A DNA stretch of 55,257 nucleotides, taken from positions 1 through 55,257 of the forward strand of contig CAJFCJ010000073.1 of the NCBI GenBank assembly GCA_904063045.1. The letters are read 5' to 3'. Shown one piece after another: positions 12,491-55,257 of this stretch (within the stretch, counting starts at the first letter, position 1; each line of letters starts with the position of its first letter). The notes under the pieces are model-generated. The model was given only the letters and a program-made list of their open reading frames with translations, ran no database searches and was not told the origin of the DNA. Source of the stretch: Dimorphilus gyrociliatus. Lineage: Eukaryota > Animalia > Annelida. A program made the translations under genes and the position numbers.

Positions 12491-12570
12491 TAAAAAAAAG
12501 ACATTTCTATTATTTTGCTTTTAAACAATCCAATAATTTTAGAACAAAGAACAAACTGATAGAAAATTAT

Positions 12571-33979: not shown

Positions 33980-34417
33980 CATTAAACATAGTTTAAGAAA
34001 ATTGAAATATACTTTTAAGAAGTTAAGTACATGTTCGATGCTGCTAATCATAAATCCATTACTGTTTTATTTGCGTAATTTGAAATCATTTTACAACATG
34101 AAGATACTTTCTTCATAAAATACGTCTTTATCATTGATAGTAAAGGAATTTTTACCCTTAATCTTGCCATATTAGATTGTTTTTGTCTAAAACCACGAGG
34201 ATGAATTTTGGTAATCAATTGACCTCGCAATTTTATAAAAAAATATAAACGTTAAAGTTACCATTTCATATTTTTCTTTAATATAAAAAGTAAACAGATT
34301 AATATATTTATACTGTATATATACTTGAAAAGTATTTCTACATCACAGTATTTGTTACACTCTTCAACACTTGCCATAAGTAGAGTTGTTAAATTAAGAA
34401 ATTGATATTGATCAACC

Positions 34418-35315: not shown

Positions 35316-37117
35316 TGAAGGATTATGTGTTTCATGTTTGTCATCGAAACACAAGACTTGCAAAACATTCTCAATGACAAAATTTAAACAATTGAATGAG
35401 AAATTAAATATAATTTTAGGTGAATATTACAAAAATACAACAGAGGTTATGAACAAAATTAATGAATATGAAAAAAATGCTGGGAAAAAATACAAAATTA
35501 TTATAATATTGTCAGACAAAAGTTTATTCTACCAAATGAACTTAGTTTGAATTTTTTCAAAACATTTTCAAATCAATGTGAAGAATTGTAAAATCTTTTG
35601 AAAAATTAAGAAAATTGAAAATAGAAATAGATAACAGCATTAAAGTTCAATATGGATTTCACAACTCTTGTGATATTATTGATCAGGTTAAAATTGAAAA
35701 CTTTGATAACAATCAAAAGGAAACATTTTCAATACTTAAAAAACACTTGATAACAGAGAACAAATTAGTTATTGATATGTCTGAAGAGCCTATTACAGAG
35801 AAGAAGATTAAAGATTTCGCAAAATTAACATTGAAAAATCAATTAATAGATATCAACTTCACTGCCTGTAGTTTGAAAACAGTACAATGTAAGGAAATTG
35901 GAAATGTCCTAAAAGATTGTTCAACAATAGAAGCAATTAATCTATCAAAGAATAAATATATGGATAGAGGAATTATAGATATTTGTGAAGTACTCAAAGC
36001 ATCATCAGATACTTTGAAAAATCTTTCTTTTAATTCAATGAATTTAAAATCAAACCAAAATACACTGATTGGAAATTTTCTTAAACATTGTTCTAGAATT
36101 GAAACAATAGATCTATCTTGGAATAGAGATATGGGGGATGGAATGATTGCTATTTGTAATGGACTTAAAATGTCATCAAAAACTTTGAAAAATTTAAATT
36201 TAAAATTCAATAACTTAAATGAACAGCGAAGTGAAGAGATTGGATATTTGCTGAAATTTTGCAACAGAATAGAAACAATAAATCTTTCTGGGAATGAAGA
36301 TATTCAAATACGGACTATTTGTGATGGACTTCAAATGTCATCAAATAATTTGAAATATATTGATTTAGAGCTTTGTTATTTAAATGATGAACAAGGTAAA
36401 AAGATTGGACATTTTCTTAAAATGTTGTTCCAGGATTGAGACAATAAACCTTTCTGGAAATGGAAATATCAAAAATCAAATATGGACTATTTGTGATGGA
36501 CTTCAAAAATCATCAAACTCTTTAAAGAATATTTCTTTAAATTCAATGAATTTGGAAGAAAAACAAAGTACAGAAATTGGAAATTTGCTGAAAAATTGTT
36601 CCTCAATTGAAACAATTGATCTATCAGTAAACAATAATATGGGGAATGGATTTTTGAATATTTGTGAAGGACTAAAAATGTCTTCAGACACTTTAAAAAA
36701 TTTTGGTGTGAATTAAATTGTAAACAAAGTATTAAGATAGGAAACTTGCTAAAACATTGTTGCAGATTGGAAACCATATGTCTATCTCAGAACATATATA
36801 TGGGAAATGGATTATCAAATATTTGTGAAGGACTTGAATGGTCATCAAACACTTTGAAAAATCTTGATGTAAGTTATTCTCAATTGAATGAAACACAAAG
36901 TATTGAGATTGGAGAATTGCTTAAACATTGTTCTAGAATTGAAACAATATGTCTTTCTGGGAATAAACAAATGGCTAATGGAAAATTGAATATTTGTGAA
37001 GGACTTCAAATGTCATTAAACACTTTAAAGAAATTTGCTTTTGATGGTTGTAATTTGAATAAAGTGGACTTCATAAAAATTGGAACACCTCGAATTTTGA
37101 ATAGGCCAACATATTAA
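35316..37117 (+). pseudogene. Intronless B-box-like / coiled-coil / RI-type LRR gene with several frameshifts
   Basis: GLCVSCLSSKHKTC then a coiled-coil-like stretch (35275-35550). LRRs alternate 28 and 29 aa in ORFs 35615-36439, 36384-36716 and 36746-37117, which overlap in different frames. Confidence 0.8.
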
Positions 37118-37299
37118 ATTTTTTCTGCATAAAATGTTAGATGAAGCTTAAATTTATATATAATTTTCTTTCAAATATGATTTAGGTAAGATTTTATATC
37201 ATTTTTTTTTGTTTATATTATGTACTGTTTTATTGATTTTTTTTTCTTATTTGGCATGCACTTCATAATAATTGGAACACCAACAAAAATGTTTATATT

Positions 37300-37645
37300 A
37301 TTCCTACTTTTGTATCTGACTACCCTCTTTTTCGATGCATTGCCATTCCATCATATAGACATGGTAACAACCCTGGCTGCTCTTTTATAAGCTCATAAGA
37401 GCATTTTTTGATTATTTTTCACAATTTGTCCTCTGATTCAAATTGTGGACCATTGTATACCAGGTTTTTGGTAAGGTGCCACATGTTCTCAATTGGGCTG
37501 AGGTCGGGGCTCTTTGCTGGCCAATCAAGAGGATGGATATCATTCATTTGAAGGCTCTTTTAGTTGTCCTCGCTGTGTGGCACCCAGCATTGTCTTGCTG
37601 GAAGATGTATTTCCTCCCCATTTTTGCCTCAATCTCTTTTGATTG
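37300..37645 (-). mobile_element. Degenerate Tc1 transposase C-terminal fragment (second family)
   Basis: Minus strand reads YIFQQDNAGCHTARTT..(shift)..DWPAKSPDLSPIENMW..NLVYNGPQFESEDKL*. Confidence 0.85.
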
Positions 37646-37654
37646 AGACTATTG

Positions 37655-37700
37655 CAGGGTTGGGTTAGGGTTACAGGGAGATCTCTTTTTAGTTGATTAT
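37655..37700 (-). repeat. Fragment of the telomere-repeat MITE
   Basis: GGGTTGGGTTAGGGTTACAGGGAGATCTC..TAGTTGATT resembles the MITE core. Confidence 0.45.
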
Positions 37701-38649
37701 TGGAATATGATCCTTGGAGCTTGCTTTTTAATTGTTGTCAAAAACATTGCATACTAGGCCTTTAAACACATTGATATTATCAATTGAAATATTAACATGT
37801 GATTTTTTTTGCTGAATATGGAAAAAATGTAAGAAATTGAAAAATTCAAATAAAACAAGGTGTAAATTTAATATTAAGTTGGAAAAGTATGTTATTTTGA
37901 TGTAAATGACCAATTTAACAACATTGAATTAGTGGATTTTGTTTATTTTTGGAATTCTAATAAGTAACGTTGTTATTTGTCCTAAATTAAAAATTTAATG
38001 AAATTTAACTAATTAGGAAAACAGTTGTATGACTTTTATTTGGAAATTAACCCTGTTTTTGATTGTAAAACTTTTATATTTATCCTCCCACTAAATAAAT
38101 ATATATTATGCTGGCTGGCCAGTTGTTTATCCCTTTTGCTACTTTGACAAGTTTACAAATATCTTTGTTGTTTCCTGGGATTGTGTGCTAATGTACCTGA
38201 GTGTCAATCTACCTAGGTGTGAATATGCCCCATATGGTTCACGCCCTCTTTTTCTTTATTATGCCATTGTTAATATTATTGATTCAAAAGAGTGGAGACA
38301 TTAAAATGAATATGAGTTTATATAAAGTGTATTATTTATAATTGCCTTTGAAAACATACTCTGCTTTTGTAAACATCATTAATAATTCACCATTATAAAT
38401 TGCTATTAAAACTCAATTAATCTTTATCATCATTCTCAAACAAAAACTGTAACAGTTTATTTATTAATGAAGTTTAACTAGACGTTCTTTGTATAATCAA
38501 TTTCTTTGTGTAAATTAGTATAGTTTTACAGAAATTGCCTTGCTCAAAATAAGTAAATTGGCTGGTAATGTGTTTGTTTTTCATAGCAAGTTGAAAGTAT
38601 TAAGTACATTTTATAGTGAAATAAATTCAATATAGAAAAATAAATTCAA

Positions 38650-39324
38650 TATTATTACAAATTTCGCATGTTAAACATTTACATATGCCATCATTAAAAT
38701 GACGTAATTTGTACGATTTTCCATCAAAAAATGTAAATGAGATAAATTTATCATGAACATTTCGCAGAGTAAGAGACATTTGTTGAGAACAGATTCCAGA
38801 ACTTTTAATAAGGACTCTTAATTATGTATTTGTTAAATTTGCATATTTGATCTGATAACTAAAAATCCAGACTTTACAGTTAAACATTTGTTTTGTTCAA
38901 CATCATTTCCAATTTCTGCAATAATTTCATCTTCAGCAGTTAAAGAACAAGTTATACCAGTTATCGTTCCATTAGGTACGGGCTGAATTGAATGGATGTG
39001 ACAGAAATGTCCACAAATGAGTGCTTTTACCCTAACCCTAACCCAGCCCTTGGCTGTATCTAACTTTTTGCATTACCCCTAACCCTTAGAGGAGACCCTC
39101 CTGAGTACAAATCAGTTGCTGTCTTCTTCTTTCTAACCATTTCTTAATCCAAAAAAGTCTTGAAATTTCTCGTTTATGGACGTTTTCTGTCGACCCCGAA
39201 TTGAATAGATTGAATTTATAAAATTATTCAATTCAAGAGCATCCTTGCAGTTTCGATAAATTGATTCCAAGTTTGAAAATTTAAATGATCCAAACAGATT
39301 TAGAATTATAAGAAAGTACATCAT
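38650..39324 (-). pseudogene. Secreted fibrinogen-like (CASPR-type) domain gene disrupted by a MITE, frameshift and stop
   Basis: Removing 38993-39197 plus one TSD joins YRNCKDALEL..SIYSI to QPVPNGTITGITCSLTAED. Downstream, in a shifted frame, SYQIKYANLTNT*LRVLIKSSGICSQQM. Confidence 0.6.
38993..39197 (+). mobile_element. Telomere-repeat MITE, full length, TSD GAATTGAA(T)
   Basis: GAATTGAA at 38985-38992 and 39198-39205. G4-type tract CCCTAACCCTAACCCAGCCC at 39030-39049. Ends GGACGTTTTCTGTCGACCCC. Confidence 0.92.
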
Positions 39325-40369
39325 ATTTTCACCTAGGAAAAGAGAAAGAGAGATAAAAGTAAAGTGACAACTGTAAAAAGATATACAGCTTTCATTCAAT
39401 ATTTAAAAACTATATCAAGTAATAAAATTAGAGATTAATAATGTATTTTATTGCATTTATCATTTTAGATGAAATTTTTCCATAAAATGCCAAAAAACAA
39501 AACTTTTTAAATGAAAACAATTAATGATCTATTTACCTTTCCCAGAGAGTATCTTACAAATGAAAATCTATGAATTAATTGTTTAAAATACAATCTAATC
39601 CTAAATCAATACCAACTTGACTAAGATGTTGTGCAAATGAAGGGAATTGCATTGAAAATTGCCAAGAATTTTATAAATTAACATAATTAAACATAACAGA
39701 TTCGTTCAAAAAATTTAACGCTTTTCTTATACCATACCTGTTGGAATTCCTCTCTGAAATTCACTTTTCAACTGTTGAACTCTGATTCATAAATATTTAT
39801 TATTCAAAGCCTGTAAGTCATCTGCATTCTTCTTTCCTTTCCTTGTTCTTCAATTGATCAACAGCAGCTAAAGTCTATAGAGAGTTGGATTTTCCAATAT
39901 ATGAATAAATAATATTCCACCAATATTACAACTATACTCTGCATAATCAATGTCAATCTCCTAAAACATTGACATTTATTTGAGAAATATTTTATGTGAG
40001 AAAGAGAATAGATTTTTCAAATTAACCCATTCAATAAATTTATATGAAAGATACGTTAAAAATGACATTTAGTATGGTGGTGGTAGACGTGTGTGTGTTT
40101 CATGAAAGGCTTGGCGGTGTGAGTGTTTGGGTATGTGTGTACTTTGATGTATCGTGATTGTAGGAATTTCGTTCTCGTCCCAAACGTATTCGTCCGTACC
40201 GCTCATTTATTACACCAAAGTACTTGTCCAAATAGAACCTCAATAAACATAAAATTGACTTTTCAAATTTAATCTCCATTAGCATTTTCTTTAATAATGA
40301 AAAAGATCTATTCGTATGTAAAGATTTGGTGGTAACTACAAGTTTAATAAAAAATGCAAAATGTTCATT

Positions 40370-40700
40370 GGTAGAGAGTTCTTATAAGTTGACATTAATT
40401 TAATTAATAGATTTCAGTGATTATACTCAAATTGGCAATGGATTATCAATGATTCTTAATGGGCTATTTTAATCCTCAAGTACATTGAAATATATATCTA
40501 TTTAAAAAATTGTAATTTGTCTGAAAAAGAATTTGTCAATGATGGAAAATTGTTCGAAAATTCAATAGCATTCTAGATTATTGACATAAACCATAAACGT
40601 TCATTTGGTAATGGTTTAATTATACATTTGCAATGAACTCGTCCAATTAGCAGAGGCATTGACAACTATCGATTTGTCTGGTTGCCAAAAAGGATTTATT
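40370..40700 (+). pseudogene. Decayed RI-type LRR gene fragment (fourth family member)
   Basis: Broken translation IGNGLSMILNGLF*SSSTLKYIS..KNCNLSEKE..GKLFEN..ICNELVQLAEALTTIDLSGC follows the same repeat consensus. Confidence 0.6.
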
Positions 40701-41446
40701 CAATGAAATTATTTTGGAAACTGAAGAAAATTTTAAAAATCTATAGTTTTTAATAGTAATGAAAAAACTGGAGTTGAAGTTATGAATATTTATAATGACT
40801 CGACCCTGTCTTGAATTGTTTGAGCAGCTTGCTCTCTAAACGAAAATAACTATTCCTATTTTGGACTATTTTTAAATCAATGTAGAAATATTTGTTCTAT
40901 AAACTTAAATTGTAAACAGCAATCTAATTGAAAAGTTGGTGTAAGGATTTTTCCAATTTCCATATGTTTAGTAGTTGCATAACAATTCCTTAAAGGGTGG
41001 AAATTGTCGTTTCAAAAGAACAATATGTTCAGTTTTTCTACTTTTCTAAATATTACTGACATAGTTGAAAACACAATGATAATTCATAATGAAAAAACTT
41101 ACATGTTTTCATCGTGTTCCCTACTATGAGCGTTTCATTTTTTATTATTATTGAAGATTATAAATTGATGACAATATAAAATCTATTACAGGCATAAGGT
41201 TTATAAAACTTATGAGTTTGTGAATAGCTTTCTATTGTGTTAAAGAATATTATAGTTTGATTTTTGTTCCTATAATAAATATATTCATTTCTATTCAATC
41301 CATACAAAATGTTTTATGTAAAATAATGTAGAATGAAATCTTTTAGTTTATTGTACAAGTTTAAAGAAGATCAATGATGATACCACATTTCTTGTACATT
41401 TTTCCAAATCTTTTACTTTGCATCCGTAGGTTGAGTTTTCTTCATA

Positions 41447-43890
41447 TTGAACAAGATTTTTAAGACGAAAAACGCAAACTTTATTATCTTAGATCAAGCT
41501 ACTCAAGCAAACTTGTTGAATTTAGCAAGAGGTAAGTTATCCTTTCAGAGCTCTACATATGGAGGCGTTACAGCACCCATGGAACCTGGTTTTGCTATTG
41601 ATAGTAATGTTGGTGTTTTACTTACAAATGTACGTACACAAATAAATGTACATATCAACTAGATATTATGCGTTCTATTCAGAAAGTCGAGATTACCATT
41701 AAAGAAATACTGTTTTTTTTTCAGGAAAACAATAATTGCTCAAGAACAAGTAAACATAGTTCAGAAAAGTCTTGGTGGTCAGTTGATCTTGAACAAATTT
41801 ATAGTATTACCGAAGTATGTCTTCTCAACGTAAATGACAATATCTGTAAGTAAATTAACAAATAATGTAGATTGAAAATCATTAGTTCATAATATTTAAT
41901 GTCCAGACGACAGACTTCAGCAATTTCATATTCTTCTTGGGAAATTTCCAAATAATGAGAATAGCATATGTAAATTCGTGACTGATCCAGTGAAAAGACC
42001 AACTTCAACAGATTCTTCTCAGTACAGCTGTTATTCTTGCAATCCTGATTCTATAGGCTCTTTTCTTACAATAAGATTGATAGCTGTTGATATAGAGTTG
42101 ATACTATGCGATGTAAATGTTAGAGGAAAGTTAATCAATGACAAAAGAGGTAGGGCAGCAGTACAGATTTTAGCAAATTGAAATAAACAGAAAAATCCTA
42201 AAATCATTGCCTTTTATAAAAAGCTTTTCATCTGTTAAATTTCGCAAATTCAAAAACAACAACGGGAGGACATCGAACTACTCATGTAAAAGAAAATGGA
42301 TATGACAATGACTATAAAACACTCTTTCATTCAAGAGGGTGGTTTTGCAAAACCATATATCTTATTCGATAATCTAAGAATCTTAAGATACCATAGAATA
42401 ATTTTTGTTTCATTATACAATGATGGTTTGTAATGAGCTATTTGTTTCGACATTTCAATTTTTATTTGAAATATTTATTAAAATGTCTTTTTCAGATCAT
42501 CATAAAAGATTTAGAAATGTTTACATTTCTATTAAAAATATTCCGGAAACAAACTTCAATCCAAACAGTATTTTTTGCGTAAAAGATTTTTCAGGAAAAT
42601 TCACAACGAAATACGAATTATTGAACGTATTGTGTGATCCTGCTCTTATTGGAAGATACCTGATTGTCAGCCGGGAAGATAATACTTATAATTACAAATT
42701 ATTAGAATTTATGGAGATATATATATATATTTCAGAAATAGATCAACATGAGCCATACAGTTTTGTATTTAAATTACAACTTATAAAAATTAAATTACGT
42801 AAACTTTCATTATTCTGATCGCAGAAACTCCACATTCATTTAAACATTACATCACTCAAGCAACATTGAATGACGTTTCTCTATCGACAAACCAATTAGA
42901 TTTATTAAAGGATGATGTTTACTATATTAATGATAATGATGGACAAATATCTTTGGCGTCAAACGATGTACTCGTTCTCACTACAAAGCTTGTTCATATT
43001 AATTCACTGTGTCTAAGAGGTTTATCATTTTAGGAATATCTTACATCAGTATATTTTGTATGTTTTTTTTCAGTGTTTCATGGAACAAATTCGAAACCTG
43101 GAATTTTAATTAAAATTACTAATTTTCTAACTGGAACAATAACCTCAAAAGAGATACCTGGCGATTTTAAACATTCGCACACAGTTTGTGTCCAATTCGG
43201 CTTTCTCCTGACAAAAAACATAAAAATAGAATCGCCAGATAGTCGAGGTTTGGCAGAAGTTGATCTAATTGCAGTTTCATCTTTAACACAGAAAAGTTAG
43301 TTTTCCATTTTTATTTACTCAAACTAAATTATAGCTAAAAAAATTTGCAGTTGGAGGAAAATGCTTAGAAAACAACCACAAATGGACATATCCAACTTCT
43401 CTTCTACCAATCAATTCCGATTTATTTTATTACATTTTGCTGGAAGGTGTAAATACTGCTGATGAAATTGTAGTCTACAAATTAAAAAATTCCACATATC
43501 AATCAGCAAATTTGTGTAGCAGTATTCAAATTTCGGATGAAGATTGGAATTCCAGAAACTACTTACTCTTTAAATGTAAAAAATTTGATGGATTTATTGA
43601 AATTAGTCATTATCTTTTACGGCAAATCGTTACTCTTTTGCACATTTTTTAAGCCACTTTCCCTTCCTTTTATTTTTTTATCTATATATGGCGTTGACAA
43701 AAAACAATCACAAGTAGTCAGGAAGAACAAGACAGTAACTGAGTTACACTTAAGAATGTCTCCTCAAATGAAAAAGGTAATGGGAAAGGTTAAAACAAAG
43801 ATAAAAGCATTGATTTGTGGTCGTTTTCTATCGCACCAGTTCTATATTCACTTTAAATCTGTAGAAAATAAACCACTTTTAACCATTTGA
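41447..43890 (+). CDS. Multi-exon F-type lectin (fucolectin/FTP) domain protein; boundaries approximate
   Basis: NLARGKLSFQSSTYGG..AIDSN; NCSRT..SWWSVDLEQIYSITEVCLLN; GSFLTIR..LILCDVNV; second domain with CDPALIGRYLIV..LEFMEIYI. Confidence 0.75.
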
Positions 43891-44342
43891 ACATGTATCA
43901 AAAAATGTGTTGTTCATGCCTCCATTTCCATTCAAATCAATTATGTATATTTTATGGTTTTTCTTATAGCAGGTCTCCTGTTTTACTACATTTTTCTACA
44001 CCTAGACAAATAATTAGGATATAATTACCATTTTTTTAAAAGTTTTTCAGGTATTTCCCGCTTTATATACTAAATTAATTTTCAAGAAAATTCAAAAAAG
44101 AATGAAATAAAATTTTTCCTAATCCTAGAATGACAGCTAAAACTTAGCCCTATACTTTACCCAATATGCATGTTTTGTCTTGGGCTTGCTTGATGCAGGG
44201 TAGAGTTAAATGCTTAAACATAATTATATCTTGCTTTTATTGTATAACAATGTTTCTGTTGACATTTCAATAATTTTCGCAGAAAAAATGTTATGTTAAA
44301 CTCGAAATCATTTTTTTAAGAAACGTTAAAATGTTTAACTCT

Positions 44343-44570
44343 ATTATCGCTCATATATATTTTAAATATCACTGTTTGAAAAAGGCCAAAAAATTTGAGC
44401 ATGAAATTTTAAAATTTGACATTTATTGAAAATTTTTTTAAAATATAGAGATTTTCTAAAATTTAAAATTAAAATGTGAACGTTGAGAAATAAGTCATTC
44501 TGAAATTTTAACTAAAGAATGTAGGCGATTGGTGTCACTCGGATATATTTATAGTAGAGTATACAATATA
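44343..44570 (+). repeat. Direct duplication of the CRAL-TRIO upstream region (partner at 46671-46980)
   Basis: Shared ATTATCGCTCAT.TATATT.TAAATATCACT and AACTAAA.AATGTAGGCGATTGGTGTCA..GGAT.TATTTATAGTAGA. Confidence 0.75.
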
Positions 44571-44834
44571 GGCCTAAATTTTTTTTATTTGATATATTAG
44601 TTTTAAAATGCTCTGTAAGAAATGGAAAACATTGCCAATGAAGGTACTAAAGTAAAACTCATGACTTTCAGAATTAAATATACTTATTTTATATACATTT
44701 ATCAAATATATGTACTTTTTAATGTGAATTTTCTAACGGTAACTATATTATCTCTCGCAAGTTGTTTACTCACAGCGACACCTGTGTATTAAAGACGAGA
44801 ATTTATTATTTGGTAATCATTTCTACCATAGAAT

Positions 44835-46157
44835 ATGGCAGAGACTGGCTACATTTGCACTCTTGAAGAAAAGTATATTAAGAAAGCTAAAGATGAATTG
44901 AACGAAATACCAAGTGATAGATTATCAGCTGTTCAAGCTTTAAGAGATTGGATCAACGAGCAGAAACATATTAAATTTGATACAAGTTTGTTATTTTTCT
45001 TTTGCTATTATAAAAGTGATATGAAATTTGTTTATTGTTTTATAGAAACATTGAACTTGATCAGATTTTTAAGGCATGCCAAATACAGTCAAGCTAAAGC
45101 AAGAGAAACAATTGAAAATGTTATCAAGTTTGTCCTTAACAATCAACTGTATTTTTTAAATTTAGATTCTCAATGTGATTTAATTCAAGATACTGTTAGA
45201 AGAGGGTAAATATTAGTTATTAAATGCAATCTAACAAAAAATAATATTCCATTTTTATCTTCTGTTTTTAGTCAATTAGTCCTTTTACCTGGATACGACA
45301 ATGAAGGTCGAATTATAGTACTCTATAAATTAAGTGTGTTTTTCAATAAAATTTTCTTATTCTTGACAATTAGAGACTGTATGTTTTTAGATATGATATC
45401 TTTTGAAGAGCTGAAGAAGAAATACAAATTTATGACCTTTATTAAGACCCTCAATGCAATTATTTTGACCCTCAAAGATGATGAAATGTTTCAAGTGAAT
45501 GGTTTTCAAATGATTTTTGACATGACTGGTTTTAATTTGAAAATGTTATCATTATTCCATGATCCCGAAGCTGTTAGATTTAATAAAGAGAGTCAGGTAA
45601 CAAATATTTTCACAATATTTCTTTCCAATATTAAAATTCAAAAAATAACAAACAAAACTAGAAAGCTCAAGTGGGAAGAATGAAAGGCATACATTATTAT
45701 AATATTGGAATACTCTTTGAAGCTCTGTTTTCAATTTATAAACCCTTCATGAGCAAGAAGCAAAAAGAAAGGGTAAGGTGTTTTTTTTGTGAAGATAACC
45801 GGATCTTTGTCACAATTACTTTCTTTTTTAGCTATATGTTCATGAAACTTTGGAATCGCTGTTCAATCATATTCCTAAAAGAATGCTACCAGATGAATAT
45901 TTACCTGATGAATATGACGGACAAAGAGCCGGGTCTCTTCTAGATCTTGGAGGTACTCCAATAAAAATAAACTTCAATTTGAGCAAAAATAAATTTAATT
46001 ATTCTTTATTCTCTTTTCAGCTGAAACGGGAGAGAGATTACTCAAATATAATGATCAAATTCTCGAGTTTACTAATCCAGATAACTTCGGTTTCGATGAG
46101 AGCAAGAAATCTTCCGACGAACCTCTACAACATTTCAGGAAATTAAATATTGATTAA
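44835..46157 (+). CDS. CRAL-TRIO lipid-binding protein, paralog 2
   Basis: MAETGYICTLEEKYIKKAKDELNEIP; DEMFQVNGFQMIFDMTG; RMKGIHYYN; KRMLPDEYLPDEYDG; ends EPLQHFRKLNID*. Exon organisation appears to match 24491-25804. Confidence 0.93.
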
Positions 46158-46302
46158 AAAGAATTCTAAATTGACTTTTATTCAAAGTTTCAATATTTGT
46201 TCCAATTCATTTCATGATTGCCTATGTTTTTCGAATAAACATTTTGTCACATTAAAGTGTTTTTCAATTTTATAAATGTAGAATTTTAGGGTTACGTGTA
46301 AA

Positions 46303-46495
46303 AGGCATGTCATGGAAAACGTTTACAAATCTTTCCTTTAACAAAACCCTAACCAAGCCCTTGTGTTTGTATAATCATCTTCAATAGTCCTAACCCTCAG
46401 ATGGTTTCCAAAAACTACATCTCAGTAGCTATCTTATTTTTTAACCTAAAATCTAACTTCCAAATATCTCATTTGTGGACATTTTCCATCACCCC
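46303..46495 (+). mobile_element. Older telomere-repeat MITE copy
   Basis: ATGGAAAACGTTTACAAAT ... ATTTGTGGACATTTTCCATCACCCC; degenerate CCCTAA core. Confidence 0.75.
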
Positions 46496-46990
46496 TGTTT
46501 AAAATTAGGGATATAGAAATAGAAGAGATATGTCTCGTTTCTCTTGTATAACAACATTGTAATAAATTTCATGCAAAAATTTAATGTAAAACCCGTAAAA
46601 CAACTCAACTTGTAGTCTTTTCAATTTTATTAGTCCTACTTTTATAAATAATACATCTTTTTTAACTTCATTATCGCTCATGTATATTCTAAATATCACT
46701 TTCTATCACATGTCAAAAATTTGTGTATGTACTTTCCTGCTGAGGTTGTAGGTAAGTACTGGTCCAAATAGAACCGAACCAGGAGTAAGCCACTTAGAAG
46801 AGAGATGTAGAATTAAATTTAAAAATTGACACTTACTCATAAAAATTATTTGAAAGGTTTAACTTTTTTTAAGTTTAAGTATAAAATGTCAATGTTGATT
46901 ATTGAGCCATTTTATAATTTCAACTAAAAAATGTAGGCGATTGGTGTCAATTGGATTTATTTATAGTAGAATGTATAATGTAGCTTTTTT

Positions 46991-47271
46991 AAAATGGTTG
47001 GGAGTAAACGATCCAGTTAGCTGAACTTTAGGGTAAGATTACGAGCTTTTCTAGGGTTAGAAAAATTTTAATTTGAATATTTTTGAGGTTAGGTAGGGCT
47101 GAACTGATGGTTGGGAAGGGTAAAGTGGATAGAATCTTGTTATTTATTGAGTTAGGGTTAAGGCTACACGCCAAAACATGGACCGTTTTCTCCCATGTCC
47201 CTAGTTTACTCCTCTTAACCATTTTCAATCCAAAATCTTGCCTTCAAATATCTTTCAATTCTGTTGACCCC
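46991..47271. mobile_element. Rearranged, inverted composite of the telomere-repeat MITE
   Basis: Minus-oriented copy 46991-47201 ending GGACCGTTTTCTCCCATGTCCC, followed directly by a plus-oriented 3' half (AACCATTTTCAATCCAAAATCTTG..TTCTGTTGACCCC). Confidence 0.7.
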
Positions 47272-47553
47272 TATATACAAAATATCAACACAAGATTTTT
47301 GTCTTTAGTATAAATGTATTCAGCGCTATATGAAAATTTCAAACAATTTGTTTGTTACATTTGCCTATTACAATTTCATTTTAGGGTTAGCATTTAGATA
47401 ATGCTGGAAAAAATAATCTTTCAAAAGGAATATGTAAAAGACAGAAGGACGCCTAAAGCATGGAAAGAGTCTTCACTATAAAATTACCATATTTCTCTCC
47501 GTTGTTTAGTTATACGTGATCGATTCTCTGTCACGTGATACACACTTTTCAAT

Positions 47554-48522
47554 ATGACTGCTGAACAATCTCAATTCGAACTTGAAGAAATAGAATGTGA
47601 AATTTGTTTAGATTGTTGGATGGATGATCCAAAAATACTGTCTTGTCAACATACATTTTGTATAAAGTGTTTCAGGGAATTACCAATTAAAAATTTTCAA
47701 ATTTTTTGTCCAAAATGTGGAGCAAATTGTCCAATACCCAAAGAAAACTGGATAGACAAACCAGTAGTTAATGATTCTGTAAAGAAGAATGGATTATCTT
47801 ATATATGTAATGGACTCTATCAATCCATCAACACTTTAAAAGATGTCACATTTTTTAATTGCTATTTAAATGAGGAAAACTGTAATCAGATTGGAAATAT
47901 GTTGAAATATTGCTCAATATTAGAAAATATTCATATAAGGTGGAATAGAAATATGGAAAATGGAATAATTCATATTTGTGAAGGTCTTTTTCCATCATCA
48001 AATACTTTGAAGGTTTTAGATTTTTATGGTTGTAATTTAGACGTTGAAGGATGCAAGCAAATTGGAAATCTTTTAGAAAATTGCTCTATAATAGAACAAA
48101 TTGATTTGGGATGGAATAAATCAATGAAAACTGGTATAGATTTTATTTGTAAAGGTCTTTCTCAATCAACTAATTCATTGAAATATATGAATTTTATTAA
48201 TTGCAACATAAATGAAGAACAATGTAAAAGTATAGGAAATCTCCTTCAAAGTTGTTCCAGTTTCGAAACAATTAACTTATATGGAAATAGTAGGGTAAAA
48301 GAAGGTATATTTGCTATTTGTAAGGGACTAATTCAATCATCAAATACCTTGAAAAACATCACTTTTTGCAATTGTAATTTAAGTGATGAAATTTGTAAAA
48401 TAATTAGAGAAATGTTAGAAACATGCTCTGAATTGGAAAAATTAGATTTAAGTTTAAATCATGAAATAGGAAATGAATTTTCTTTTGATATTTCTCAACA
48501 ATTGTTTAATTTAAATATTTAG
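47554..48522 (+). CDS. Intronless RING-HC plus RI-type LRR protein (putative E3 ligase/sensor)
   Basis: C3HC4 RING CEICLD..ILSCQHTFCIKC..CPKC, followed by alternating 28/29-aa LRRs (LKVLDFYGCNLD../IEQIDLGWNKSM..). Confidence 0.9.
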   Translation: MTAEQSQFELEEIECEICLDCWMDDPKILSCQHTFCIKCFRELPIKNFQIFCPKCGANCPIPKENWIDKPVVNDSVKKNGLSYICNGLYQSINTLKDVTFFNCYLNEENCNQIGNMLKYCSILENIHIRWNRNMENGIIHICEGLFPSSNTLKVLDFYGCNLDVEGCKQIGNLLENCSIIEQIDLGWNKSMKTGIDFICKGLSQSTNSLKYMNFINCNINEEQCKSIGNLLQSCSSFETINLYGNSRVKEGIFAICKGLIQSSNTLKNITFCNCNLSDEICKIIREMLETCSELEKLDLSLNHEIGNEFSFDISQQLFNLNI

Positions 48523-48829
48523 ACAAAAAGTTGAAGATAATCTCCCAGGAATAAAACAAAAATTGTAATAAAAATGATATGAAAATTTTTTTATTATTCC
48601 CTCATTTGTAATTTAGAGAAACATAAGAGTCTCTCTCATTCATCACATAAAGCACCTACACATTTCTCAGTCTATAATTTACTCCATCTAGAGTCTATAA
48701 TTGATATTACCATAGAGTAATTTAGGTCTATATTTTTGTTAAATATACATTTATCCATTATTTGAATCAAGTAAATGTTCTTCAGCATAAATGACTTGAA
48801 CAATGTTTAACACAAATGAAAGAGAAAAC

Positions 48830-49005
48830 CTCTCAGTAGGCTAGAGTTTGAGGTAAGATTTGGGGCATTTCAAGGTTAAGAAAATTTTGATTTTGATTTT
48901 TTTTCAGGTCATGTAGGACTGGCGGTTGGAAAACGCAAAATTGAGAGTCCCATTAACTGCTAGTTTAGAGTTTGGGTAAAACACCAAAAAATAGGATGTT
49001 TCTCA
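48830..49005 (-). mobile_element. Degenerate copy of the telomere-repeat MITE (47010-type subfamily)
   Basis: GAGGTAAGATT..AAGGTTAAGAAAATTTT..GGGTAAAACACCAAAAAATAGGATGTTTCTCA parallels 47030-47195. Confidence 0.55.
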
Positions 49006-49699
49006 ACATTACTGTCACAAATATATTTCTTACATTTGATATAATATGTTATAAATAATTTCTATAGAAAATTGTCTTTTCCTAGTTTAAAAACTAAATT
49101 TTCAATGTTTACATTATTTTTTTTCCCTCTCGGAAAACCTTTCTATGTCAAGTGATCAATACCTTGTAAAAGATCGGAGGAAATATCAATTATAAAAAAC
49201 GAGTGACATTACTTTATATTTTAGACTTGGCGATGTAGTTTCATAATTTTCAGGATAATGTCATATGGAATTAACAAAATGCTGTATCTATGAAACCAAG
49301 CAGATAGGGCGCTGTCTGTTCGTTAATTTTATATACTTTATTTTCTTGTTAACCAATAAAAGAAGATCTAAGGCCACGCGTCCCCCATGTTTTTTTTACA
49401 AATCCAATTTCTCTTGGAAATTATCAAATTTTTGTTCAATACCACTAAATATTTAAAAATTGAGAAATATAACTAGACAAATATTGATCAACTGTTAGAA
49501 TAATTAATGCTACTCTAACAAATTTATTGTACTTAAAACATTGATATATCATAATTCGTCGTAAATATAGACGAGAATAGACTTTTTCAATATACTCAAT
49601 ATATTAAGTATAACATACACTTTCAGATAATTACTAATTGCAATCATTTATCTCTTTTTTAATATATGTTGTCTGTTCAAATGATGAGCTCTGTGAAGA

Positions 49700-52025
49700 A
49701 ATCTCTGTTATCAAATGACAACGTTTACCACTAGTTCGGTATACAAATCCTCTAAAAAAAGAATGTAAATAATGCTAGAATTTTGGAAAGAAGGTATGTT
49801 TTTATTACAAACTTGCAAAGAAGATCAGCAGTACAAACGTTCAAACATATTTCAATGTCTAAACCTTTCATCGAACTCCATTTGAATATTTCTGAATAGT
49901 ATGGCTGAGATCCAAAAATTCTATCCACATGAATTTCGTATTCTGTAACTGTTTGAATTATTTTTTTATCAAAATGAATTTTTGAAATCGTATTAGTAAT
50001 CATTTTTACTTTTTGGCATTTTTCCCACAATCGAATAGCCAGTACTGTTTGTTATTGAAGTAAATTCTGTACCTAGATAGCAGTGTAGTGACACATGAAA
50101 AGTCACTGCTCTAAATAATAGTTAAAGGTTTACTGGAAAGTGTCTTACAAGTTATCTACTCTACTTCTTAGTTAGCATTCAGCAATACAATATATATACA
50201 TTACATACCTGCACTTTGAACTTAAACTGCAAACATCTAGACATTCAGTAAGATCTTTAACAATTTTATTTGAAGATCCCCAAACTGAAGTAAAATACGA
50301 AGTACCTCCAATAGCTACAGAATTTGCATAAACTGAATATTCATCTATTTTTAGATAAATTAAATATGAAGTTCGATGCTCCTTTTATTAATAAATAAAA
50401 ATACCTGTTAACAATTTAACATACGTATGACAGTCATTGTTGAAAGTTTCACCGGTAAAACTACTCTTTAAATTGCAATTATTGCCAGTAATATTAAAGG
50501 TAATTGCTCTGGAAAAAAGACATAGAAAGAGTTATTCTTTTAAAAAAACGGAAAAACCTGCACAATGGTTCCGAATTGCAAATACTTAGACATTCCTCAA
50601 CATCTGTATTAGGAATTGTTGATAATCCAAACTTTGCAGAAACAAAAGGAAAATTTAGTGTCACAATTGAATTTTTATAAAGTTTATACTGATGCTCTAT
50701 TTCTAGAAAAATAAGATTAATGAAATGAATTGCTGATGAGACAATATTTACCTGAAGGTATTTTCATATAAAGATCATGTCCATTTTTTTCCTCTTTACC
50801 TATGACAATGCTTTTAAATTCACAGGTCATATTATGAACATCAAAAGCAACTGCCCTAAATCGAAGATTGGTAAGAAAAGAATAAAGCTAAAATTTATTA
50901 AAACAACTTGCAAAGAAGATCATAACTGCAACTTCTTTTACAATGGTCAGCTGATGTTACATTTATTAAAGATGATGTCCAAATTTGGGAAAGAAGTGGA
51001 ACATTAGGATTTGCGTCAGAATTTTTGTATAATTTATATTGAATTGCTTTAATTCATAAACAAAAACGAAAACGAATAAAAACTCATGTAAAATATAATA
51101 ATAAAACTTTTATATATAATCACATTTTGGATGTTTTGCATAAAGCCTGAGACCCAGTTGATAATACTTTCCATAAAAAAGAGCTTTAAAATAACACCTT
51201 TTTAAGGCCACGTTGTAATCAAAAGCTCTGGAAAATTAGTTTTCGATGAAGAATAAGTAATTTTATTAGGGATATTTTTCTATTTACTTGCATCCTTCTT
51301 CAGTGTAGCATGTATCCATGCACTCTTCAACGTTCGTTACTTGAATTTCACTTAAACTCCATCGAGTAGATTCAAAAGATATACTTGGACCAGCAGCCTC
51401 ATTATCAAACACATCAAATTTGTCTGAAACTGTTTTTTTTTTATATATTATTTTAAAAATAATTTAAAAGACACCTACGTGATGATTCAATACAAATATT
51501 CGAAACGGATATTAAATAGACAAGGATCAAATATATTTTATAGACCATGTCTTCTTTCCAAATGGATTAGGAAGTGAATGAAGACTGTTTTCAAATAAGG
51601 AATATTCAATACAAAATCTATATAATTGTATTGTTCAGAAATTTAACAAAACACTCCGTTTCTAACTACAAGTAAAATTTATATTTAATAATAATTTAAT
51701 TATTAATTCGCAATGTATTGACTGCTTAAATAAATACTGTAATTACATTAAAAGCTCCATCTACTGGATTACAATAAAACTAGTATTTTTAATTGATATT
51801 TTTTGAATTTCGTTATTATTATTCCAAAGCCTTTTACGCTGTTCTCTAAAATTCTACTTCCATTTTACTTATTTATAAGTTAGACAAAGAAATAACTGAA
51901 TCATTATTTAAAACATCAAATTTCCTTATAGTTTATTCTAAAAAAAAGAAAATTATGACTCTTTTCCAACAAAATTACAGCAAAATAGAGAATTAGAGAG
52001 AAAGATTGAAAACTTGAAATCATCT
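49700..52025 (-). CDS. Probable secreted multi-PAN/Apple-domain protein; structure uncertain
   Basis: Signal-like MISSFQSFSLILYFAVILL near 52025. PAN motifs IQVTNVEECMDTCYTEEGCK (~51290-51350) and LDIEICLNVCTADLLCKFVI (49752-50030). Confidence 0.45.
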
Positions 52026-52156
52026 CACCAAAAGTCATTTTTAGTCAATTACTTGTGACTTTTCCAAGTCGGCATTTTCTGTTGAAAACACTTTATGTGA
52101 ATTAAGAGAATTTATTTGCGAAAAAACTACAGTGCATAAAACAATTCGTCATAACT

Positions 52157-53120
52157 TTAGACAATATCAACTTGGCATAGTTGGAATGAACTGTAATTTT
52201 TAAAGCTATAAATATGAACAGCTTCGCAATATCGATTGTTACACGAACATACAAATTTACATTCTGTATTGCTTGACTGGAATACTTGACATTGTTTAAA
52301 CACTCTAGAGATTTGGGGTTCAGGAGGTGTATAAACTAATAAGTTACTGCTTAGTGTATTTTCGCAAACTAAATCTGTTCCTCTGATAGAAATGTTAATT
52401 AAATTTAGAGGTTTATTAGCTCCTAGAAAAGGAATCCAATGGATAATTTTCATTACCTACACATGTAGAGATATCAGAACCGAACAACTTTGCCATCATA
52501 TCTGTAGAATAATAAGGGTTAGGTGAGAGTTGTTCTCCTCTAATAGAACATGTTAACTCATCTCCAACTGCCGTTGTGAATTGACATTGTTCATTTGTAG
52601 AACAAATTGGATATTGTTGAAAGCGCCCACAGTTTTGTGGTTTTACTCTAATATTTTTCCTAAGCCTTTCCCATTTCTAATGCATATCTATCGAAAGATC
52701 TCACTTGTTCAGGTAAATGAGAATGAATAGTTCCTTAGAAAAATCCTTTCGTTTTCTGAAAACAGTATCTATTGCTATATAGTTCGTTGGTGATAGTAAA
52801 ACCTTGACAAGTTGAATCTTCAAGGCAATGTTTAGCACATAATCAGAGATCTTAAGCTTCCAATACTGCTACATGATAACTCAAGTCAAACTTGTCAAGA
52901 ACTCCTTTTTTTATAAGTAAATCCTGATACAGCATATTTTGGTAAAAAAACATCCATAATTCTCATCAAAGCAATTCAAATTTTTCCAACCACTAGCTTT
53001 GCATTCACTTTGGTTTATGTCACTTTTGCCTATTCTTATTCTTTTGTCAATGCTAATATCACATTCATCATCAAAATATCCTGCAAACGTTGATCTTATT
53101 TGACAAATCAAAAAATGTAA
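52157..53120 (-). CDS. Probable secreted trefoil-like plus PAN plus C-terminal Cys-module protein
   Basis: ECDISIDKRIRIGKSDINQSECKASGW...CFF (trefoil-like, 52911-53330). PAN-like ..EQCQFTTAV..LTCSI (~52520-52620). Terminal ECKFVCSC..FQLCQVDIV* (52157-52453). Confidence 0.5.
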
Positions 53121-53628
53121 TAAAAAGATACGGCAATGTAGATTTCGGATAGGGGTGTGAACGTACCCATGAAGGGTTCGCACCCGACCCCATAGATTTC
53201 TCATAATACCACTTGTCTCTAATGATAAAAAGAAAACAAATGTTGAAATAAGCTTCTTTGTATACGAAAAACAACAAAAATACGTAAGATTCTCTATGAA
53301 TTTTAACCAAAAAATATACATAAATAACATAAAAAATGTAAAAAGAACATATACATCATAAAATAATGATACATTATAAAATTTTTGGATTATTCTTTAC
53401 ATTTTTCACCTTTCAGAAAAAATATCTATATACACGAATTTTTCACTAGAGGGGTGAATTACTGATGAATTGTAAATATAATACTATTATCTCTATATGT
53501 ATTATATATTATAATATCTTATTTTTAACATTATTCACTAATTTCACTTATCTATGTTTCAAATATGAAAACATCGGAAAATTGTACAACGGCTATATTT
53601 AATTGTTTTTGCAATGTGATTTTACAGT

Positions 53629-55257
53629 CTATACTCTAGCAATATCCTTTCCAAAGTGTCTGCTAATTGTCTGACAACTGTGGGAGTCCAATAAAGAATG
53701 TCTGATATCAAATATTTGTAAATTTTTTGATGACCTTTCAAGTCCTCTACAAATATCTCTCCATCCTCTTCCAATATCAGAATTCCATCCTATATATAAT
53801 TTTTCAATTTTTGAACATTTCGTCAATAATTTTCCAACAGATTTGCACATATTTTCATTTAATTTACAATTTTGAAAACCAATATTTTTTAGAGTATGGA
53901 CAGAATTTTCAAGTCCCTTGCATATTTGAAAAAATCCATCTCCCATATCTCTATTCAATCCTATAAATATTGTACAAATTCGAGTACTTTTGGACAGGAA
54001 ATCGCCAATATAAAAGGCTACATATTTTGTTATATTACAGTTTTCAAAATCTATAGCCGTTAAGTTAGCACGGAACGCGTACAATTCTTTAAAAATTATA
54101 TAAACGCCATTGATCATACTTGGATTACTTCTAAAATATGTTTTTTCAATTTTTGAGCATTTCGTTAGTAGATCTCCAATACAAATGCACAAAAATTCAT
54201 CAATGCAACATTCATCGAAATATAGGCCTTTTAAACTGGTTGAAGATTTTACAAGCCCTTTACAAATTGAAGAAAATCCCTGCCTTCCCATATTTCTATT
54301 ACAATTTAAATGTACTTTCTCAACTGTTGAACATTTTAGCAATAAATTTCCAAGAGAAATGCTGCTGTTTTCATCTAAATTACAGTCAGCAAAATCAAGA
54401 GTCTTTAAAGTATCAGACGAAGTTTCAAGTCCTCCGCAAATAGATATAATCGCTTCTACAAGATCTTTATTAGATTTCAATTGACATGCCTGCAATTGAG
54501 TACAATTCACTAACAACTGTGCCAAAGATAATCCCATATTTTCATTTAAATTACACTCTTCTAGGTAAAGAAATTTTAATTTTGAACAAGAATTTTGCAG
54601 ACCATTACAAATTGCAAAAAATCCTTTTCTCATATTTGTATTTCCTTCTAAATCTAATTCTTCGATATGATGACAATCCAAAAGTAGATTTCCAAGATGA
54701 TTGCTAGCGTCTTCATCCAATTTAAACTCTGTAATACGAATTATTTTTAATGTGTAGGAGGAACATTGAAGACCTTTGAAAAGTTTCAAATTCTCATTAG
54801 CTATAGTATCATTGTGTCCAATATTGATTTGTTGAATTTGAGGACAGAGAGTGAAAAGATTTTTAAGCTCTTCACCATATTCTCCACAGAGACCGCAATT
54901 ATATAAGCTTATCGTGATCAATGTTTTGCAAGATGTCTTCAATCCTTTACAAATATCAGAGAAATGCATTCCAATATTTGTATTTTCTCCAAGGTAGACA
55001 TTTTCAAGTGTTGAAAAATTTCGCAATGTATCTATAATAAGTTTGCACATACTCTTATTCAAATTGCAGTTAGTAAGATCAATTTCCCTTAAAGTGTCAT
55101 GTGATCTTTCAAGTTTCGTAATAATGTGTATCAAACCATTTTCAATGTTACTATTTTCTGAAATGTTCAAACATTGAATTCGACAGGAGTTTTTGATAAG
55201 ATTTCCAATTACTACAGACATATTTTCAGTTATTTTACATTTTTGAAAATTAATCCT
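53629..55257 (-). CDS. Long intronless RI-type LRR protein, 5'-truncated by the window edge
   Basis: 530-aa ORF that stays open to position 55257. About nine 57-aa units of alternating 28+29 residues (LREIDLTNCNLN../LENVYLGENTNI..). Confidence 0.9.
   Translation of the reverse strand, partial: RINFQKCKITENMSVVIGNLIKNSCRIQCLNISENSNIENGLIHIITKLERSHDTLREIDLTNCNLNKSMCKLIIDTLRNFSTLENVYLGENTNIGMHFSDICKGLKTSCKTLITISLYNCGLCGEYGEELKNLFTLCPQIQQINIGHNDTIANENLKLFKGLQCSSYTLKIIRITEFKLDEDASNHLGNLLLDCHHIEELDLEGNTNMRKGFFAICNGLQNSCSKLKFLYLEECNLNENMGLSLAQLLVNCTQLQACQLKSNKDLVEAIISICGGLETSSDTLKTLDFADCNLDENSSISLGNLLLKCSTVEKVHLNCNRNMGRQGFSSICKGLVKSSTSLKGLYFDECCIDEFLCICIGDLLTKCSKIEKTYFRSNPSMINGVYIIFKELYAFRANLTAIDFENCNITKYVAFYIGDFLSKSTRICTIFIGLNRDMGDGFFQICKGLENSVHTLKNIGFQNCKLNENMCKSVGKLLTKCSKIEKLYIGWNSDIGRGWRDICRGLERSSKNLQIFDIRHSLLDSHSCQTISRHFGKDIARV

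Follow-up and report, generated by a model that had tools for sequence, protein, structure and literature searches.

A probable local cluster of intronless genes joining TRIM-like heads to NLR-type LRR arrays in the annelid Dimorphilus gyrociliatus

A TRIM-type head of RING, B-box2 and coiled coil followed by an LRR array of the ribonuclease inhibitor (RI)/NLR type is, as judged from sequence, the layout of a large gene family in Dimorphilus gyrociliatus. The region from 35.3 to 55.3 kb of the window analysed here, which is the complete contig C73 of 55,257 nucleotides, is probably a small local cluster of this lineage-specific, intronless family, in which its turnover is displayed and for which the likeliest role would be in innate immunity. 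Cytosolic innate-immune recognition in animals has two big protein families, the TRIMs and the NLRs, whose recognition domains normally differ.

Architecture and distribution of the family

A search of the worm's own genome with the family LRR gave 209 scored matches among 1459 first-look candidates, and the cross-match of head and LRR searches identified at least 14 single-ORF RING-B-box2-coiled-coil-LRR genes elsewhere in the genome, with head and LRR in the same open frame on C96, C5, C47, C71, C76, C226, C116, C111, C214, C7, C145, C49, C22 and C125; P0001 (712 aa) is one example of an intact gene with the full layout. The original prediction that the loci of the window are members or wrecks of such a family is borne out by these genes. 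Many of the copies are broken, which is consistent with birth and death, and both the architecture and this history are supported. Matches that span head and LRR were found only in Dimorphilus or in Logan runs SRR233722xx from another AT-rich species, among 1.84 billion representatives searched, so that the family, predicted to be lineage-expanded, is supported as lineage-restricted. No published description of the layout was found in the literature.

The heads are supported as TRIM-like by profile and by predicted fold. A profile of seven heads matches the TRIM3 RBCC structure 8amr with an E value of 3e-18 across RING, B-box and coiled coil, and also matches TRIM2 (5e-16) and TRIM21 (1e-14). 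Among 34 heads the B-box2 ligands, C-x2-H-x7-C-x8-C-x2-C-x4-H-x2-C, hardly vary; a single paralog sequence reaches only E 1e-3 with Pfam zf-B_box, below the cut-off. In the AlphaFold model of a full-length head the RING and B-box have a pLDDT of ~90 and are followed by a 67-residue helix (residues 119-185, pLDDT ~94), and the top Foldseek matches of this model are KAP1/TRIM28, TRIM21, TRIM2 and the TRIM5alpha B-box-coiled-coil, with the B-box fold of paralog heads matching the B-boxes of TRIM29, TRIM41, TRIM39 and TRIM5.

LRRs alternating between 28 and 29 aa had been claimed at four loci of the window, and at three of them the repeat is clear: motifs recur every 57 aa within ORFs 35615-37117, 47554-48522 and 53629-55257, where a 57-aa unit HMM trained solely on paralogs from outside the window gives per-unit E values from 1e-11 to 1e-25. 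The fourth locus is a faint relic with a weaker signal. Profile searches with the LRR retrieve RNH1 (E 9e-34) and NLRPs, and the structural matches include RNH1 and NLRP3/5/14, which supports assignment to the RI/NLRP subtype on modelled as well as sequence grounds. The LRRs are shared with caspase-LRR genes, and the window LRR is 35-42% identical to single ORFs at C95, C305 and C112 that combine NACHT and LRR; the family LRRs are homologous to those of NACHT-LRR genes in this worm. The loci had been predicted to be free of NACHT, and of the 98 NACHT matches across the genome none falls on C73, where the 5' end of 53629-55257 lies beyond the contig; none of 26 paralog ORFs contains a Walker motif or NACHT. 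Neither a NACHT upstream of the loci within C73 nor broad conservation as a single-copy gene was found, and intact RING-B-box-LRR genes are present in the genome.

Loci of the window

The cluster contains one intact member, one LRR array at the contig end, one copy beheaded by a retroelement and one nearly erased relic.

The intact member is a transcribed, intronless RING-LRR gene of 322 aa at 47554-48522 on the forward strand, with a C3HC4 RING at residues 15-57 (47596-47724) and eight RI-type LRRs, in four 57-aa units, at residues 84-311 (47803-48486). The TRIM-type RING-HC proposed at this locus holds up well: Pfam zf-C3HC4 scores 25 bits against a cut-off of 21, the top-scoring PDB sequences are without exception TRIM RINGs (TRIM2 at 2e-7, followed by TRIM56, TRIM3, TRIM69 and TRIM32) and eight of eight zinc ligands are present. 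Many active RINGs have an Arg or Lys "linchpin" after the last Cys; at this position the gene has Gly, and its aligned paralogs R, K or I. The B-box and coiled coil are absent and the RING joins the LRR directly, so that the protein is not tripartite. In the AlphaFold model beta-strands start at residues 97, 125, 154, 182, 211, 239, 268 and 296, giving a spacing of 28, 29, 28, 29, 28, 29 and 28, with an LRR pLDDT above 90 and Foldseek matches to RNH1 (3tsr, TMq 0.64, rmsd 2.1) and NLRP3.

Expression of the gene is seen in RNA-like runs, in which exact-match contigs cover 47751-48411 without a joint within the gene; runs X2-X4 are labelled "DNA?" or "?" and are taken as RNA on the grounds that GT..AG introns are missing from their contigs and intergenic DNA is left without coverage. 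The absence of introns, proposed for all the loci, is thus backed by RNA for 47554-48522 and rests on ORF continuity at the others. A paralog on C61 is 88% identical with its ORF intact, and is also transcribed; both copies are missing from the public protein set. Between them dN/dS is 0.24 at a dS of 0.24, the same in the RING and LRR parts, and the gene is under purifying selection. Their similarity is limited to L009:1380-2482, equivalent to 47433-48535 of the window, and includes an upstream block of 120 bp (47433-47553, forward strand) which contains a CACGTG palindrome at 47532 in a motif scan and is presumed to be a promoter or 5' leader.

At the contig end, on the reverse strand, 53629-55257 is an open, LRR-only frame of 542 codons with ~9.5 units and at least 19 LRRs by the unit HMM. 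The frame is open to base 55257, the last of the contig, and any N-terminal head would lie beyond. Partial copies on C97 (86%) and C177 (91%) stop short of the 5' part, and the protein collection holds no longer version.

Two of the four loci had been called decayed and both are, with frame changes and stops. The larger, 35320-37117 on the forward strand, carries four frame changes and a stop overall. Its first part (35320-35606, with one frame change and one in-frame stop) covers the later half of the B-box2 (C-x2-C-x4-H-x2-C) together with the beginning of the coiled coil in tblastn alignments with the heads of the full-length paralogs L011, L015 and L014, and residues 1-200 of P0001 as query in the own-genome search find C73:35296-35490 at E 1.2e-7; the predicted B-box/coiled-coil piece is therefore real, though partial. 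The second part (35615-37117) holds the linker and about eight 57-aa LRR double units, or ~16 LRRs, spread over three frames in the ORFs 35615-36439, 36384-36716 and 36746-37117, with unit-HMM E values from 1e-5 to 7e-25 and with the RING-headed paralogs P0001, P0002, P0003 and P0008 as best blastp matches.

The family locus had been placed from 35316, and the first four bases of that interval (35316-35319) belong to a gypsy-like element, so the family-derived sequence begins at 35320. This element, a fragment with broken gag, protease and the start of an RT, occupies 34414-35319 on the forward strand; a D-S-G protease motif and an RT-start-like pol stretch are visible in its ORFs and alignment. 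At least 40 genomic copies at ~90% identity all match only query 115-1020, that is, window 34414-35319. The fragment has taken the place of the 5' part of the pseudogene, with its RING and the initial half of its B-box, and marks the family boundary. This copy was probably beheaded by the retroelement fragment first and frameshifted afterwards.

The relic, originally given as 40370-40700, is a heavily decayed LRR sequence of ~2.5 units with stops and frameshifts at 40431-40919 on the forward strand. Its LRR fragments, which no RING precedes, are collinear across 40458-40919 in shifting frames and are detected by the unit HMM alone; the two stronger pieces are 40493-40621 (E 1.4e-4) and 40800-40919 (E 2.7e-4), and the others are weaker. 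A search by tblastn at 1e-3 misses the locus, whose tblastn fragments contain stops, and the claim is much weaker here than it was first stated.

Proposed function and its alternatives

By analogy, the family is most likely to take part in cell-autonomous recognition of foreign or abnormal molecules, as a component of innate immunity. The concave face of the LRR horseshoe would bind a target and the RING would recruit E2~ubiquitin, so that either this target or the ligase is marked; members of full length would dimerise through the coiled coil and be activated by clustering, as TRIM5alpha and TRIM21 are. The short RING-LRR form has no coiled-coil scaffold and so may be a simple one-chain adaptor-ligase or modulator. 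A tentative formulation is that these proteins are NACHT-independent intracellular pattern-recognition and restriction factors, in which a foreign ligand on the NLR-type LRR directly triggers RING clustering, driven by coiled coil or B-box, and ubiquitination, with the short forms as dedicated single-chain ligases or regulators; the logic would resemble that of TRIM5alpha and TRIM21, with the sensor surface of an NLR. The immune reading rests on analogy, on turnover and on fast concave-face evolution in one subfamily. The anti-transposon role that had also been suggested has nothing in its favour except the location of the genes among transposons.

The concave-face check proposed for the LRR gave a divided answer. 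With the positions defined before the test, dN in one subfamily is 0.46-0.64 at concave-face positions against 0.17-0.22 elsewhere, a rate about three times faster, and dN/dS exceeds 1 in six of eight pairs, which are non-independent and include some LRR-only ORFs. Entropy among 91 LRR units is also highest at these positions. Between 47554-48522 and its C61 copy there is no concave-face excess (5/28 against 21/199 positions, p=0.34; dN/dS 0.31 against 0.24 at other positions).

It is unlikely, but it has the best claim among the alternatives to an immune role, that the family consists of substrate-adaptor E3 ligases for endogenous proteins, acting in regulated protein degradation as F-box/LRR proteins do and without any part in immunity or surveillance. 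A RING with an LRR is formally the one-chain equivalent of a SKP1-F-box-LRR receptor, FBXL2 is among the structural matches of the 47554 protein (rank 42), and that gene shows plain purifying selection with no signal on the concave face; the very high copy number, the many pseudogenes, the lineage restriction, the fast concave face of the one subfamily and an LRR shared with NLR and caspase-LRR genes all speak against it, as does the Dimorphilus genome paper, in which most of the few expanded families are assigned to immune responses (PMC7854359). More improbable is that 47554-48522 is a functionless truncated by-product, or a decoy or regulator competing with full-length members for ligands or E2s. 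It lacks B-box and coiled coil and has just eight LRRs on its RING, a Gly at the linchpin and no call in the public protein collection, and further RING-direct-to-LRR forms such as L038 exist; transcription of both copies counts against a by-product, and their intact ORFs, eight zinc ligands and dN/dS argue against neutral decay. A decoy or regulatory role is compatible with the same data as an active ligase.

That the LRR loci are pieces or pseudogenes of ordinary NACHT-LRR NLRs, with RING and B-box neighbours by coincidence, is very improbable. NLR LRRs of the same type and the ~98 NACHT matches in the genome would favour it, as would the loss of the 5' end of 53629-55257 at the contig edge and a NACHT ORF ~4 kb from the C61 paralog; yet C73 itself is without such a match, RNA depth drops to zero immediately upstream of 47554, and every LRR of the window scores best against RING-headed proteins (53629-55257 gives 275 bits with P0003 and 234 with the NACHT-bearing P0016). 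An ordinary-NLR origin is refuted for 47554 by the one ORF that holds both RING and LRR, and for 35320 by collinearity of B-box, coiled coil, linker and LRR with the RING-headed paralogs.

Relation to known recognition proteins and ligases

Set against TRIM (RBCC) ligases, especially the class IV restriction factors and sensors TRIM5alpha and TRIM21, and TRIM2/3, the family has the same order of C3HC4 RING, single B-box2 and long coiled coil, and is likewise multi-copy and fast-evolving with a variable C-terminal recognition domain; it differs in that an RI/NLR-type LRR array replaces PRY-SPRY, NHL, FN3 and the like, and in that the genes are intronless. The B-box and coiled coil, which define TRIMs and drive their activation, have been lost from the intact gene of the window. 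With NLRs (NLRP/NLRC) and RNH1 it shares the LRR subtype, the 28/29 alternation and the horseshoe fold, but it has neither a NACHT or other STAND ATPase nor a death-fold domain, and its output would be a RING where NLRs recruit caspases or kinases through oligomerisation. Zebrafish NLR-B30.2 and fintrim genes are a precedent for the exchange of domains between NLR and TRIM families that have expanded in a single lineage, and their recognition domain is under positive selection (PMC4852459, PMC2657112); there the fish NLR gained a TRIM-type B30.2, whereas here a TRIM head carries an NLR-type LRR.

The "pattern-recognition E3" LRSAM1 also has LRR, coiled coil and RING in a single chain, and its LRR brings the ligase to bacteria, on which the RING builds a ubiquitin coat (PMC8567218). 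Targeting by LRR and ubiquitination by RING in this style is the working model proposed for the TRIM-LRR family, although in LRSAM1, a single-copy conserved gene, the LRR lies at the N terminus and the RING at the C terminus, a SAM domain is present and there is no B-box. The LRRs of LRSAM1 are of another subtype. An LRR also binds the substrate of a ubiquitin ligase in FBXL receptors and in the IpaH/SspH LRR-NEL ligases of bacteria. These two groups use another catalytic or recruiting module (F-box with SCF, and NEL domain), and their heads are non-homologous to that of the TRIM-LRR family.

A TRIM ligase bearing the sensor surface of an NLR would be evidence that signalling by the LRR horseshoe does not require a STAND ATPase, and the family would add a new C-terminal class to the TRIMs. 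The animal is small, can be cultured and has a 74-Mb genome, and its compact intronless genes would allow ligand recognition and ubiquitination to be studied on one chain, and within 20 kb the window gives a snapshot of turnover in a maintained minimal member, a transposon-beheaded copy and a relic.

The intact gene and its incomplete relatives

The window, with a G+C content of ~28%, is the entire 55,257-base contig C73, part of a 77.9-Mb assembly of the miniature annelid Dimorphilus gyrociliatus, and it holds one minimal intact member of the family and three incomplete ones. The intact member, apparent from the ORF listing, is a RING-LRR ORF of 322 codons at 47554-48522 on the + strand. Residues 15-57 of its product form a complete C3HC4 RING that scores over the Pfam cut-off, and every one of its best matches in solved structures is a TRIM RING, namely TRIM2 (2e-7), TRIM56, TRIM3, TRIM69, TRIM32, TRIM31 and TRIM21, in agreement with the original prediction that one locus carries a TRIM-type RING-HC. 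The RING is followed by a short linker that retains the post-RING motif of the family heads and then by four 57-aa units, or eight LRRs; no B-box or coiled coil is present in the protein sequence. The LRR part is modelled by AlphaFold with pLDDT >90, the beta-strands starting at residues 97, 125, 154, 182, 211, 239, 268 and 296, a 28/29 alternation. In fold this part matches NLRP3 as well as the mouse ribonuclease inhibitor 3tsr, the latter with TMq 0.64 and an rmsd of 2.1 Å across 229 columns. Its neighbours in the ESM-Atlas are LRRC31, NLRP3-like proteins, RNH1 and LRRC34/74A.

The ORF listing and motif spacing reveal a strict 57-residue period in 35615-37117 (+), 47554-48522 (+) and 53629-55257 (-), and a profile of the 57-aa unit, built from 91 units that all come from paralogs outside the window, matches these three loci unit by unit with E values of 1e-11 to 1e-25. 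The unit consensus has beta-strand motifs of the LxxLxLxxC and IxxIxLxxN types, spaced 28 and 29 residues. Such repeats had been proposed for four loci, which holds for these three; the fourth was missed by tblastn at 1e-3, and the unit profile recovers it at 40458-40919 only as a relic, made up of collinear, frame-shifted pieces with stops (best E 1.4e-4).

A gypsy-like element, of which at least 40 copies at ~90% identity are found, mostly on small contigs, matches the window at 34414-35319 and ends there. Beyond that boundary, starting at 35320, full-length paralogs can be aligned with the window over the second B-box half, coiled coil, linker and LRRs, and no RING or first B-box half was found upstream of this point by the same alignment, so that the predicted B-box/coiled-coil segment exists with its B-box reduced to the second half. 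The reading frame of 35320-37117 shifts four times and contains an in-frame stop, and the locus is a beheaded, decayed copy of the family; together with the frame-shifted, stop-bearing locus at 40431-40919 it makes up the two decayed loci that had been expected. At 35320 the pol reading frame of the gypsy-like element passes without a shift into that of the B-box remnant, a continuity that is read as accidental.

The third incomplete locus, 53629-55257 (-), comprises 542 open LRR codons (~9.5 units), with no stop before the contig ends. The copies on C97 (86%) and C177 (91%) are partial and do not reach its 5' part, and no longer version of the protein was found in the protein collection.

Expression and duplication of the 47554-48522 gene

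Public runs X2-X4 were taken as RNA because their contigs skip introns and leave intergenic DNA uncovered: six GT..AG introns of 57-68 bases are skipped at 44985-46019 in the neighbouring CRAL-TRIO gene, and depth is zero over intergenic 44000-44787 and 47349-47545. The CRAL-TRIO (SEC14-like) gene at 44835-46146, with its six confirmed introns, thus serves as an internal control for the nature of these runs. Exact-match contigs from X2-X4 extend across 47751-48411 with no joint anywhere within 47546-48530, and the gene is therefore both transcribed and unspliced; the contigs that differ at 15-40 places derive from a paralog. It is for this gene that the proposed lack of introns across the loci is borne out. 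A pair of small + strand introns of the GT..AG type, 60 and 55 bases long, lies at 48723-48906, just past the RING-LRR stop, with low depth in X4; these may belong to a separate, weakly expressed gene or to 3' exons.

A paralog at C61:60370-61308 is intact and encodes a protein 88% identical to that of the window gene. Similarity between the two contigs is confined to a 1.1-kb block (window 47433-48535), essentially the gene alone; with retroposition considered as a possible origin of the pair, neither a poly(A) remnant nor a target-site duplication was seen. The two copies have diverged with a dN/dS of 0.24 (dS 0.24), equal in the RING and LRR parts, which shows that both are under purifying selection. 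Neither was found in a large protein collection, and both are therefore apparently unannotated.

A palindromic CACGTG core is located 22 bp upstream of the ATG at window 47532 and in the same place in the C61 copy (TGTCACGTGAT in the window, TGTCACGTGAC in C61). Such a core constitutes an E-box and is similar to the CLEAR element. As a family-wide promoter motif it was discarded, being restricted to these two short copies and lacking in the 400 bp that precede each of 21 other family ORFs.

Upstream of the window gene, the non-coding repeat at 46561-46954 reaches a depth of 8,000-15,000 in the DNA run against a baseline of ~100 and is abundant in the RNA-like runs too. It contains no ORF and has no Rfam match, the Rfam scan of the whole window having returned zero matches; the depth ratio suggests ~100 copies.

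A TRIM-type head joined to NLR-type repeats

Searching the species' own genome with the 322-aa protein gave 209 scored matches among 1459 first-look candidates. The majority lie on small contigs; stops interrupt some of the matches, and the open frame around a match is often short. Querying with a head, residues 1-200 of the full-length paralog P0001, gave 116 matches. When the coordinates and frame lengths of the LRR and head matches were compared, at least 14 loci proved to encode both head and LRR in a single frame of 485-854 aa, on C96, C5, C47, C71, C76, C226 and C116, and further on C111, C214, C7, C145, C49, C22 and C125. The RING-B-box-LRR architecture that had been pieced together from the window therefore exists as intact genes elsewhere in the genome.

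The head is TRIM-type on several grounds. A profile built from seven heads hits 8amr, the RING-B-box-coiled-coil structure of TRIM3, over all three modules (E 3e-18), followed by TRIM2 (5e-16) and TRIM21 (1e-14), and the B-box2 ligand pattern is almost invariant in 34 heads. In the model of the head, RING and B-box are predicted with confidence and accompanied by a 67-residue helix; its best Foldseek matches are KAP1/TRIM28, TRIM21, TRIM2, TRIM23, TRIM25 and the TRIM5alpha B-box-coiled-coil. Pfam B-box scores of single sequences fall below the cut-off, which is why annotation says only "RING-type domain-containing". Another feature of the genome is a tandem cluster of ~25 TRIM-like RING-B-box-coiled-coil heads at C5:2,523,000-2,600,000, in ORFs of ~500-550 aa; as it is missing from the LRR matches it probably represents a different expanded TRIM subfamily whose tail is of another kind.

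The window loci are unlikely to be ordinary NLR genes. NACHT and LRRs of the same type do occur in one ORF on C95 (1733 aa), C305 (1490 aa) and C112 (1417 aa), and the family profile also ranks highly the NACHT-LRR proteins P0016 and P0018 and the caspase-LRR protein P0009. None of the ~98 NACHT matches in the genome lies on C73, however, as anticipated for a NACHT-less family, and LRRs of the NACHT genes share 35-42% identity with the window LRR, whereas those of family members share 45-52%. For the 53629 locus, truncated at the contig end, the RING-headed P0003 is also the better relative (275 bits, against 234 bits for the NACHT-bearing P0016), although by a small margin. The presence of the same LRR type in NACHT and caspase proteins indicates a module common to several head types in this lineage, and the family joins a TRIM ligase-type head to a new putative recognition domain derived from NLRs. 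The nearest described analogies are the domain exchange of zebrafish NLR-B30.2 and fintrim genes (PMC4852459) and LRSAM1, an LRR-coiled-coil-SAM-RING "pattern-recognition E3" (PMC8567218).

Downstream of the C61 copy, at a distance of ~4 kb, there is a NACHT ORF (C61:65193-65672); TRIM-LRR genes are thus intermingled with NLR genes. P0016 itself (2396 aa) combines NACHT, FLYWCH, a MULE transposase domain and family-type LRRs in one predicted protein, and is either a transposase captured in an NLR or a merged gene model.

Putative recognition surface and distribution

The most variable positions in the 91 units are the x positions of both beta-strand motifs. With a concave-face set fixed in advance from the LxxLxLxxN geometry (unit positions 13, 14, 16, 18, 19, 41, 42, 44, 46 and 47), eight pairs from a subfamily with 74-82% identity (L024, L027, L034, L036, L038) gave a dN of 0.46-0.64 on the face versus 0.17-0.22 elsewhere, and the ratio of face dN to whole-alignment dS exceeds 1 in six of the eight; these pairs are not independent, and the values are Nei-Gojobori estimates from an AT-rich genome with gene conversion unmodelled. 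The excess expected on the concave face is thus seen in this subfamily, and is not significant when the window gene is compared with its C61 copy. Homology and this evolutionary pattern suggest that the proteins may act as ligases, bind ligands through their LRRs and have an immune role; the one observation pointing to an anti-transposon role is co-location with transposons.

No description of TRIM-LRR, RING-LRR or RBCC-LRR proteins, or of Dimorphilus LRR, NLR or TRIM proteins, was found in the literature. When 1.84 billion representatives were scanned in full with HMMER, ~30 clusters had a match spanning head and LRR. Twenty clusters were looked up, among them 17 of the head-plus-LRR ones and P0139, matched over its head only; save one false lead, all are Dimorphilus entries or Logan assemblies, a lineage-restricted distribution that speaks against a broadly conserved single-copy orthologue. 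The false lead, an "RBCC" match in the ray Mobula hypostoma, is a low-quality model that concatenates three TRIM-PRY/SPRY units and is not a TRIM-LRR. B-boxes with ordinary LRR_8 in metagenomes and TRAF-type domains with LRR_6 in rotifers, with ESM-Atlas scores <0.9, are suggestive as leads only.

Three Logan proteins that were traced (P0040, P0097 and P0105), and P0006, found by word search, come from runs SRR23372216, 228, 229 and 231, whose accessions turned up in no paper. The P0006 gene on L049, the one Logan gene tested, is absent from the Dimorphilus assembly at the DNA level; the Logan loci have 25-28% G+C, and a Cupin_5 gene next to them codes for a protein sharing 64% identity with its Dimorphilus counterpart. 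These data suggest a second AT-rich species, a relative of Dimorphilus, that carries the family, in which case the RBCC-LRR fusion predates the split. In SRR23372229 and sister runs the stretches L049, L050, L053 and L055 hold tandem RBCC-LRR arrays, with three genes in 9.5 kb on L049.
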